NCBI GenBank assembly: GCA_964035545.1
Contig: OZ037770.1
Coordinates: 6,396,729 to 6,460,728, forward strand
DNA from: Bugula neritina
Taxonomy: Eukaryota > Animalia > Bryozoa
Length of the DNA: 64,000 bases
Reading direction: 5' to 3'
Under the pieces are notes generated by a model. It made no database searches. It saw only the letters and a list, made by a program, of their open reading frames with translations, and had not been told where the DNA came from. Shown here one piece after another: positions 25,001 to 30,623 of the stretch. A program made the position numbers and the translations under genes. The number at the start of each line of letters is the position of its first letter. The first letter of the stretch is position 1.

Positions 25001-28000
25001 ATAGTAGTTTACTATGTAGAATAGTAGTTTAATATGTAGAATAGTAGTTTACTATATGTAGAATAGTATTTTACTATGTAGAATAGTAGTTTAATATGTA
25101 GAATAGTTGTTTAAAATTATTATATGAATGTATGCTGCCGGTGAAGTTACATTATGGACAATTTTTAGAGTTCCTGCTGGAACCTGTAGTTTTTGTACGT
25201 GAAACAGAAAATGAATGAATAGTTCTTATAGCCTATTGTTAGTTTAGAAGACAAGGATGATCCAAAGCTGATCCTTCTCAAAAATGATATTTTATACATG
25301 AGCAAACAACTATAGTTACTTCCAACTATTTTAGGTAGTGCCAAAGTTTCTTACATCCTTGTTATATATTCCTATGCAACACTTTCTTATTCCCTCTTCA
25401 GTTTTATGTACACAACTCAAAATTGTTTGTGTTTGACAAGGGTGTGTAGGTTGGTGTGAGGTGTTATCAAGTGATCTGGTTGACCAAGCTTTGCAAGTTG
25501 ATGGCATTGCTTGACGGCATCTTTGTTTCTGATGTAAGATTCTTGGAGAACTTTATTGTTCCGGGTGGAGGTTTTAACTGTTTGATAGTATTAATCAAGT
25601 TTAACCCAAAGCTGAGTAGATTCCATCATCATAACAATGCAAGAATCGAGTATTTTTCCTTGGTTCTTTAACATGTGGTGGCGATGTTTTAGCTGTGGAC
25701 GAAGCATTTGGTTTTAGTCTGGAAAGACCTGTGAAGATAGGATAACATGAAATAAAAATAATTGAAGCAAAATCCCTTGGAAGCAAGTGGGCTCTTGATT
25801 TAATTGTCAGAATTTCATATTGATTGTTTATATAGTTGGAAATAATGTTGTTATTTGTTGACCATTTGTTGCCAATATAGAATGTCACCTCTTCGGTTGA
25901 TCATTTGTTGTCAATATAGACCAGGATGCTACCTCCACAGGTTTTATGACTAGCATTTGAAAGTCTGTCCAAAGATAACTGTTCATAACTTTCATGCTTA
26001 GTTTTTTAATATAGAACTTCTGAGTAAGCCAAGATTTGTTCATACAAATAAGCCGAGATAGCTTTTCATTTCGTTAATTGCTTTTAAGGAGAGAATGAAG
26101 TTCACCGAGGTTACTTCTTATAGATTGTGCATAGGTGAGCATTTTCCTAGTGTCATTATTGTTATTGACTTTAAATCTGCCAACTTACACTTTTTTCTAG
26201 ATCAAAGAAGTCACAAATCAAAAAAAATCACTGCCTGTTTGTAGTAAGTGTACCAAATTTCCTTCAACTGATGTTGAGTCATGAAGTTTTTATTATCCAA
26301 TAGAGAGTTATGGCCCATACAATATTCAGGGATTTTTAACTTTTGTAGCTGTAGATGAAAATGTGATTATAATAGAGCGTAAAAAAGGATGCAATCGCTG
26401 CGCCACAATGTCAACAATGACGGCATTAAAACTATCTGTTAAATTAAAAAGGACATCCAAATACAACCTCATGCTGCAAGATCCAACTGCCAACTAGTAC
26501 TTGGGCTTGCATAATTTATTTTTTGTGATACTTGCTGACTTTTTACTAACAGGGGTATACATATACAATTACAAAGATATAGTGAATATACACTATATTT
26601 AAGTATAGCTGAGAACAATTTACCAAAAACTCCATCTTCAAACGTATACTCAAAATACACAACATCATCATATTTGTCATATCTTTTACACTCCAGTTTT
26701 AACTGGGAGTAATCTGAGTATGGTGATACACTGTATGACACAGTCACCATCTTGTTTGGGTCTGCTTCTGATACAGCCAAGTCAATTACTGTTTTTGGTC
26801 CTGAAAATATAGATTCATTTATGTAGTACACTCACGCACGCACAAACGCACGCCCGCACGCACGCGCGCATGCACGCACGCACACACGCACACACGCGCA
26901 CACACACACACACACACACACACATATATATATATATATATATATATATATATATATATATATATATATATATAACAGTGGTCTAGGGGTTAGAGCGTTT
27001 GCCTATAGTAAACACGAAGGTCATGGGTTCGAGCCCAGACAAAGGCCATTGGTGATGTTAGGAAGAGCATCCAGTCATAATTGCTCCTGAGTGCCTCATT
27101 TAAATAAGTCCTTAGCCCGCTTTAACAAAAACCCTTTCTATCAGGGGTTTCTTACGAGGATAGTTACTATAAACTTGCGTGAGAGTTACATATATGAATA
27201 TATATGAATATATATAAATATAAATATATATATATATATATATATATATATATATATATATATATATATATATATATATATATATATATATATATATATA
27301 TATATATTATATATATATATAATGTATGCTGAACACACTACATTATATATATGTGTGTGTGTGCGCGTGCGTGCGGGCGTGGGTGCGTGTGTGTGTGTGT
27401 CTGTGTAATATTGTCTGTGTGTGCGTGTGTATATGAAACACAATTGCTTATACACGAAAGCAAACGCTCACATGCACAGAAGTGCATATTTCTGCCTGCG
27501 TGCGCGTGTGGGTGTGTTTGTATGTGCGTGTGCTCCTGCGTGTTTGTGGCAATATAATAATATATTGCAAACTCACTCTGCTTGACAAGCCATGTGTGAA
27601 ATGGTGAACCCCGTGACCTTTCCATATTCAGTAGTTCTATAATGAAAAGGTATTCTCTGCCAGCAATCAAATTATCAATTGTATATTTTATCTGAAAACA
27701 AAAGAAACCTAAAAACCTAATTAAATCATCATTTTTCAATGAAGAAATTATTGTCTGCTTGCATTGAAACAATGGTTTACTTTTTGTTATTTTATTTGGC
27801 AATTGTGAGCTTCTTGTTTTAGTTTCAGCTGCACATTTTCAACTCCTCGCTCTATCATATAAACAAGGATTCTTGTGATCAGATAATATAAATGTTAAAG
27901 TACTAGCTGAACAGCCATATGGTTACAAAAAAGCAATTCTAGTTGATAGATAATTTTTTTAAAAGTTTAAATATTTTAACAGCATATACAAGTGATAGTA

Positions 28001-30623: not shown

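Follow-up and report, generated by a model that had tools for sequence, protein, structure and literature searches.

Amino-acid change between gene copies in the N-terminal domain (D1) of a tandem family of nine candidate receptors in the bryozoan Bugula neritina is about three times that in the rest of the protein, and in exon 2, the first of the two exons that encode D1, it is accompanied by no rise in either silent or intron change. The explanation that we prefer, and consider somewhat better than an even bet, is that D1 is a paralog-specific recognition tip, diversified once the genes had duplicated and conserved thereafter. D1 would be an all-beta domain of 106 residues located immediately behind the signal peptide in a type I membrane protein. 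The remainder of that protein would comprise an F-type-lectin-like domain (FTLD) embedded in a second module, additional ectodomain exons, a single transmembrane helix and a short tail that contains tyrosine. After duplication, amino-acid changes in D1 would have accumulated at or above the neutral rate, chiefly in the first ~30 residues and in one indel loop, while short gene-conversion tracts would have shuffled segments among the copies. Purifying selection would then have held each version of D1, so that the nine proteins would combine a shared lectin-bearing stalk with nine distinct tips. D1 is thus probably the part of the protein that sets specificity, and we infer its topology, its role in ligand specificity and an adaptive cause for its divergence from the results described below.

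Gene structure and domain identity

The window, which is the whole stretch of DNA that was analyzed (64,000 nt of contig OZ037770.1, positions 6,396,729 to 6,460,728 of the forward strand), is AT-rich. Self-comparison resolves it into three head-to-tail units of ~21-24 kb each; genes A and B are complete and gene C is represented by its 3′ half. Whole-genome searches with exon 2, exon 3 and a profile built from nine exon 2 sequences yield exactly nine copies, all on the minus strand of this one contig and arranged head to tail over ~265 kb, which are named 0, A, B, C, D, E, F, G, and H. The genome profile search returned no tenth copy or other donor of a D1 exon 2 type, and no second haplotype of the locus in assembly GCA_964035545.1. 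The genes were placed on the minus strand by six-frame comparison of the units together with exon alignments and a frame check, the exons were concatenated for the frame check and for codon statistics, and the sequence of gene 0 was used through exon 10 only.

Gene A starts with an ATG at position 30623 (window coordinates, minus strand throughout). Its exon 1 (30571-30623; donor GT 30570-30569) encodes a 17-residue hydrophobic signal peptide after the start codon and ends two bases into a split codon, and the exon 1 block is 88-94% identical across paralogs 0, A, B, C, and D. The first part of D1 is encoded by exon 2 (30073-30277; 205 nt with 68 full codons, acceptor AG 30279-30278) and the second part by exon 3 (27577-27691; 115 nt with 38 codons, donor GT 27576-27575), the two being separated by intron 2 (27692-30072; 2381 nt). 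The segment 27577-30277, to which the earlier note had assigned a hypervariable membrane-distal domain, therefore extends exactly from the first base of exon 2 (30277) to the last base of exon 3 (27577). Exon 4 (26624-26800), which has canonical splice sites and split-codon bases at both ends (one at the 3′ end and two at the 5′ end), encodes the initial half of the second ectodomain module, ahead of the lectin insert. The FTLD is encoded by exon 5 (24636-24406) and exon 6 (24146-23913), which with intron 5 occupy 23913-24636. These are followed by exons 7-13 between 17.3 and 8.1 kb, by a transmembrane segment in exon 14 (approximate limits 7690-7842), where a hydrophobic stretch of ~23 residues is kept in genes A-D, and by a tail exon with tyrosines, exon 15, near 7090-7010. 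In gene B, also on the minus strand, exon 1 (52297-52349; ATG at 52349) encodes the signal peptide and has the conserved donor, exon 2 (51834-52038) has canonical splice sites and a 3′ half nearly identical to that of paralog D, exon 3 lies at 46627-46741, and the homolog of exon 14 at 32505-32657.

Every splice site in exons 1-6 of gene A is a canonical AG/GT site and the joined frame is open (338 codons with no stops); hence exons 2 and 3 together encode what would be the first 106 residues of the mature protein, i.e., D1. The signal peptide, the single transmembrane helix and the short tail with its tyrosines were read directly from the sequence, and together they give the architecture expected of a type I membrane receptor. 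As the signal peptide exon 1 is conserved and exon 14 encodes the transmembrane segment, D1 is soundly predicted to be membrane-distal. All nine paralogs have open frames in exons 2 and 3, and indels are multiples of three without exception in the nine paralogs and in four orthologs (see below), over a tree length of ~7 substitutions per codon. The statement in the earlier note that exon lengths are exactly conserved is correct for A, B, and C (205 and 115 nt in A and B) and does not extend to the family, in which exon 2 encodes 67-71 residues, a variation due to an indel loop that follows a conserved G-V.

D1 retains a recognizable framework among the nine copies. Residues Y10, V37, F51, and N52 of exon 2 are kept, T4, I9, G11, R12, and Y14 of exon 3 are invariant in all nine, where they contribute to a YTIxNLIAGRxY motif, and eight of the nine copies have an N-x-T sequon. 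The motif looks FN3-like, a resemblance that is unproven. Pfam gives no match to exon 2 alone and its fn3 family matches the exon 3 peptide in only two of nine copies (E = 0.04), while sequence-profile searches of the PDB with the D1 exons returned nothing relevant. Assignment of D1 as a fibronectin type III domain is not supported, as none of the fn3 profile matches is significant (Pfam, PDB, hhalign). Nor did profile comparison support an origin of D1 by duplication of the second module, in which the lectin insert would occupy the place of intron 2, hhalign giving probabilities below 1% for exon 2 against exon 4 and for exon 3 against exon 7. ESM-Atlas features for D1 (all scores below 0.9) provide beta-sandwich and CBM-like leads only, and AlphaFold2 models exon 2 alone as four beta-strands with a mean pLDDT of 53. 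The identity of the lectin domain is more straightforward. The exon 5 ORF matches the fucolectin-related protein of PDB 2j1r (E = 3e-6), as well as 3le0, 4gwi, and FBP32 (3cqo), the WWRVDL core motif is present in exons 5-6, and Pfam F5_F8_type_C_2 matches the half-domain alone at E = 2e-4, a score that falls short of its cut-off. In a single HMMER pairwise alignment, two residues of the fucose-binding motif (His ... Arg-x-Asp ... Arg/Lys) of 2j1r appear to be replaced in gene A, the His of 'THT' by Thr and the Arg of 'YNR' by Tyr.

Divergence of D1 between gene copies

The amino-acid identities between A and B that had been counted by eye in the earlier note, 33/68 (0.49) for exon 2 and 24/38 (0.63) for exon 3, are reproduced exactly, and its estimates of ~90% for exon 6 of the FTLD and ~97% for exon 9 agree with the values obtained here (69/77 = 0.90 and 32/33 = 0.97); exon 4 has an identity of 0.72. 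When gene A is compared with the other copies, exon 2 has the lowest identity of any exon (29-49%) in all comparisons except that with C (81%), and exon 3 ranks next lowest (46-67%). This divergence is of a particular type. Between A and B, pN is 0.272 in exon 2 vs. 0.093 in the other ectodomain exons (Fisher p = 2.5e-9), while pS is 0.237 in exon 2 vs. 0.221 elsewhere (p = 0.85). The same is true of C and D, a phylogenetically independent pair, with a pN in exon 2 of 0.308 vs. 0.094 (p = 2.9e-12) and a pS of 0.193 vs. 0.244 elsewhere, and exon 2 pS is raised in none of six pairs. By the NG86 method, the A-B comparison gives a dN of 0.338 and a dS of 0.285 for exon 2 (ratio 1.18), compared with 0.069 and 0.197 for the FTLD, 0.093 and 0.275 for exons 8-13, and 0.293 and 0.726 for exon 3.

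The non-coding sequence provides a second reference. The introns that flank the D1 exons are alignable between A and B, as had been claimed, with 1574 of 2381 nt aligned in intron 2 (76.6% identity) and 1270 of 1323 nt aligned in the sequence that precedes exon 2 (82%). A-B K2P distances in non-coding sequence are flat along gene A (0.16-0.32); that of intron 2 (0.283 ± 0.016) matches those of introns 5, 6, and 10 and is no higher than in other introns, and the stretch upstream of exon 2 has the lowest divergence (0.205). Identity in 200-nt windows is lowest (0.68-0.69) over exon 3 and the 5′ part of exon 2, compared with 0.73-0.88 in introns and 0.90 in exon 1. Over its first 100 nt exon 2 is 30-38% diverged vs. 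18-21% for intron 1 (500-585 nt), an excess found in five of the six A-D pairs (p = 0.023 to 0.0002), although these pairs are not independent of one another and intron 1 may itself be conserved (K2P 0.205), and the excess in exon 2 is smaller against intron 2, the raw difference of which is 0.23-0.26 in well-aligned pairs. The positions that vary among A-D cluster in D1 residues 2-30.

A nonsynonymous excess with no synonymous or intron rise, as in domains under diversifying selection such as the MHC peptide-binding region or domain 1 of Alr, is therefore found for exon 2, while in exon 3 synonymous change is raised as well. Exon 3 has a pS between A and B of 0.465 vs. 0.221 (p = 0.013), a dS across pairs of 0.38-0.78 and an ω of 0.4-0.75, and intron 3, which adjoins a microsatellite block, is barely alignable between A and B (63 of 775 nt). 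Given the raised pS, the microsatellite block and the poorly alignable intron, the divergence of exon 3 may in part reflect age or a local mutation rate.

The copies also have a mosaic history. Trees of different segments conflict with good support, exon 2 giving (A,C),(B,D), the FTLD giving ((A,B),C),D and exons 8-10 giving (A,D),(B,C), and between genes B and D only 4 of 105 nt differ over the 3′ half of exon 2 vs. 33 of 97 nt over its 5′ half. Pieces are clearly moved between copies by short conversion tracts. An import of the divergent 5′ half of exon 2 from unseen donors was considered and rejected, as the whole-genome profile search shows the nine known copies only.

Selection on D1 and competing explanations

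Codon models were fitted with our own GY94/F3x4 likelihood code, with IQ-TREE used for nucleotide topologies only. Such single-tree tests need to be read with care as conversion between copies breaks the assumption of one tree. Under M0 with all nine copies, ω is 0.73 for exon 2, 0.50 for exon 3, 0.52 for exons 4 and 7, which flank the lectin insert, 0.34 for the FTLD and 0.34-0.36 for exons 8-13. In the A-D quartet the maximum likelihood ω of exon 2 is 1.43, a value that is indistinguishable from 1 (p = 0.2), while those of the FTLD and proximal exons (0.29-0.31) are below 1 at p < 1e-6. Over the various analyses ω ranges from 0.29 to 0.35 for FTLD exons 5-6 and from 0.52 to 0.77 for exons 4 and 7. 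For exon 2 in the nine copies, M1a places 60% of sites in the neutral class and M2a gives no significant gain over M1a (p = 0.13), nor is that comparison significant in any of the segments tested. For codons 1-33 of exon 2, a region chosen post hoc, ω in A-D is 2.2 (p = 0.038), and M2a vs. M1a with nine copies gives p = 0.065. Evidence for ω above 1 is marginal only, and positive selection on D1 is accordingly suggestive and not proven. The comparison of per-exon dN/dS with intron divergence that the earlier note had proposed as a check gives an ω for exon 2 of 1.18 (A-B) or 1.43 (A-D) with introns that are not raised.

The later history of D1 is provided by a second lineage. Among 1.84 billion representative proteins, a profile search recovered only four true relatives of D1, all from one closely related lineage, and D1 therefore seems to be lineage-restricted. 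Each of the four is a read-through ORF in genomic sequence, the sources being two JGI metagenomes and one Logan assembly, and there was no spliced D1 product among the matches of that search. Their contigs match the nine-gene cluster in gene order at 78-89% identity, the non-coding sequence just upstream of exon 2 is 12-16% diverged, and in the tree each relative pairs with its positional ortholog, namely 0, G, C, or B. Orthologs keep 71-92% of exon 2 residues. Across the four pairs ω for exon 2 is 0.25-0.47 (about 0.37), and in the pooled pairs pN (0.073) is below pS (0.183; p = 3e-5). The exon 2 dN of 0.04-0.16 compares with 0.083-0.094 for membrane-proximal exons on the identical contigs (ω 0.29-0.33). 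Continued fast change between orthologs is thus not what is found, dN in exon 2 being equal to that in the rest of the protein. Under a two-ratio branch model, ω is 0.41 after the split of the lineages vs. 0.76 for older branches (LRT p = 0.026), and the family-wide value for older branches (0.76-0.79) is not different from 1. As orthologous copies of exon 2 are under purifying selection, D1 is not neutral junk. The constraint between orthologs and the shift in branch rate together point to early fast change between paralogs followed by conservation of each version. The diversification of D1 is hence one between paralogs, and the term hypervariable that was used in the earlier note is an overstatement in an ongoing or allelic sense.

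How much of this pattern could arise with no adaptive cause is best considered with a D1 that is a loosely constrained cap or spacer, which drifts faster than the rest of the protein and has no role in specificity. We view this as possible but unlikely. It would accommodate an ω for exon 2 in A-D that is indistinguishable from 1, a family-wide value of 0.73, the large neutral class under M1a with no significant M2a class, and the similarly raised ω of exons 4 and 7 (0.52-0.77). A constant weak constraint, however, does not explain a threefold higher dN between paralogs, since D1 in orthologs is as constrained as the rest of the protein (ω ~0.37), and it is also at odds with the significant difference in rate between older and post-speciation branches and with a 5′ half of exon 2 that has diverged beyond intron 1. 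A greater age of exons 2-3, which on this account escaped homogenizing conversion, is improbable as the general explanation. Conversion does act in the cluster, as the conflicting segment trees indicate, and exon 3 has several of the features expected, with its raised pS and dS, its intron 3 of which little can be aligned, and a family-wide tree dS of 3.97, compared with 2.82 for exon 2 and 2.1-2.7 elsewhere. Greater age, however, predicts an ω well below 1, and exon 2 gives 1.2-1.4, with a pS that is raised in none of the six pairs, an intron 2 that is like introns 5, 6, and 10, and the lowest divergence in the upstream sequence. Its excess being nonsynonymous only, the older-segment reading, which the earlier note had itself named as the result that would count against its proposal, is largely refuted for exon 2 and holds in part for exon 3.

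Two further explanations concern what the D1 exons are. If D1 were an allorecognition-type determinant with extreme polymorphism among colonies, divergence between paralogs would be a by-product. Tandem type I receptors with a most-variable distal domain do resemble the Alr genes of Hydractinia (PMC9546547), but we give allelic hypervariability little credence, as orthologs separated by 12-16% non-coding divergence retain most exon 2 residues at an ω of 0.25-0.47 and the assembly has no second haplotype of the locus. Two independent second-lineage samples, which differ at 1% of 1770 nt, also have identical exon 2 proteins, a comparison of very low power. The notion that the exons are mis-called, or that the genes are decaying pseudogenes, is barely credible. 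It could draw on the lack of a spliced product among the protein-profile matches, but the frames are open, the splice sites canonical and the indels in frame across nine paralogs and four orthologs, and purifying selection is evident between orthologs (p = 3e-5). The preferred reading, a paralog-specific recognition tip, is close to the proposal of the earlier note that D1 is a specificity-determining domain under diversifying selection. The nonsynonymous-only excess in exon 2 agrees with that proposal, while the non-significant M2a tests, the raised pS of exon 3 and the constraint between orthologs do not. Rapid change between copies with no silent rise, followed by conservation, is the pattern expected from sub-specialization of ligand specificity after tandem duplication.

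Relationship to known receptor families

The cluster is a candidate bryozoan receptor family, in which nine receptors would share a conserved lectin-like stalk and differ in their outer tips, and no bryozoan recognition or immune receptor family is described in the literature searched. With only four relatives among 1.84 billion representative proteins, the seemingly lineage-restricted D1 may represent a recognition module of recent origin. Immune-type receptor families are known to show this general pattern, whereas the Bugula family, its orphan tip domain and the phylum are new. The KIR, LILR, and Ly49 families are tandem immune receptors of vertebrates, in which the distal ligand-binding domains have diverged nonsynonymously and conversion leaves a mosaic. 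As in these families, the stalk, transmembrane and tail modules of the Bugula proteins are common to tandem paralogs, although the folds and the phylum are unrelated.

Among colonial invertebrates, the comparison is with Alr1, Alr2, and the wider Alr family of the Hydractinia allorecognition complex, which are also described as tandem type I membrane proteins, with a membrane-distal domain that is the most variable, a conserved stalk and signs of exchange between copies (PMC9546547). The two systems differ in that the Alr ectodomains are Ig-like, while Bugula D1 belongs to no family that could be detected and an F-type-lectin-like domain forms the conserved core, and in that domain 1 of Alr is hypervariable among alleles, while Bugula D1 has diverged between paralogs and is conserved between orthologs. 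It would be attractive to extend the parallel and view D1 as the specificity determinant of a bryozoan self/non-self system for colony fusion or kin recognition, in which an orphan beta domain on a lectin stalk is highly polymorphic among colonies and the nine tips serve as a combinatorial label, but we regard this as a long shot.

The stalk itself is related to the F-type lectins, which include the fucolectins, FBP32 and the pneumococcal fucolectin-related protein (PDB 2j1r; reviewed in PMC5712786), exons 5-6 being homologous to the FTLD fold. It departs from these lectins in the replaced His and Arg positions of the fucose motif in the alignment of Bugula exon 5. Moreover, in the Bugula receptors the lectin domain is the conserved part (ω 0.3), and the part that has diversified is a separate N-terminal domain.

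Uneven divergence along the coding exons

Divergence between paralogues can change abruptly within a single exon, as in exon 2, which encodes the first part of the N-terminal tip domain. Its 3′ half is nearly identical in genes B (window 51834-51938) and D (L005:1498-1600, in cluster sequence beyond the window), with only 4 differences in 105 positions, while the 5′ halves of the same two exons are 34% different. This pattern looks like a short gene-conversion tract with an end inside the exon. At the other end of the receptor, the tail exon (7010-7090 in gene A, 31825-31905 in B and 53575-53655 in C) shows no synonymous and four to seven nonsynonymous differences among the three genes, although these counts are tiny. 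Exon 9 (33 residues; 15477-15575, 37947-38045 and 58026-58124) has a protein identity of 91-97% among eight of the nine paralogues, even though silent sites in this exon have diverged to an ordinary degree (pS of 0.20 between A and B). Exon 9 is a strongly constrained motif.

Repeats and mobile elements in the introns

Intron 3 is filled by a microsatellite block of compound (AC)n/(AT)n/(GC-rich) type, which lies at the matching position in gene A (26830-27550) and gene B (46300-46610) and adjoins exon 3, where synonymous divergence is raised. An LTR-retrotransposon-like insertion (11600-14300, minus strand) with long gag/protease/RT/integrase-type ORFs interrupts intron 10 in gene A, and the corresponding introns of B and C lack it. 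A repeat of ~430 bp, probably a small mobile element, is present in introns of all three window genes in varying orientation (9376-9803, 35335-35765 inverted, and 57387-57815; copies 92-93% identical), with weaker copies at 21040, 49510-49940 and 63050-63215.

Gene C and a possibly lost member of the cluster

Gene C extends from window 53112-62689 past the window into the adjoining cluster sequences L024 and L025, an apparent span of ~56 kb in which exons 6 and 7 are separated by an intron of ~35 kb. The sequence alone is compatible both with a single split gene and with the remnants of two genes. Upstream of exon 2 of gene C, at a distance of ~1.6 kb, L025 carries a lone tail-exon-like relic (genome C6 ~6507746-6507823). 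At the site of this relic in the second lineage, whose contigs match the cluster in gene order, the entire 3′ part of a gene is present (L040:1062-6823), and this difference suggests that one cluster member upstream of gene C has been lost from the Bugula neritina genome.
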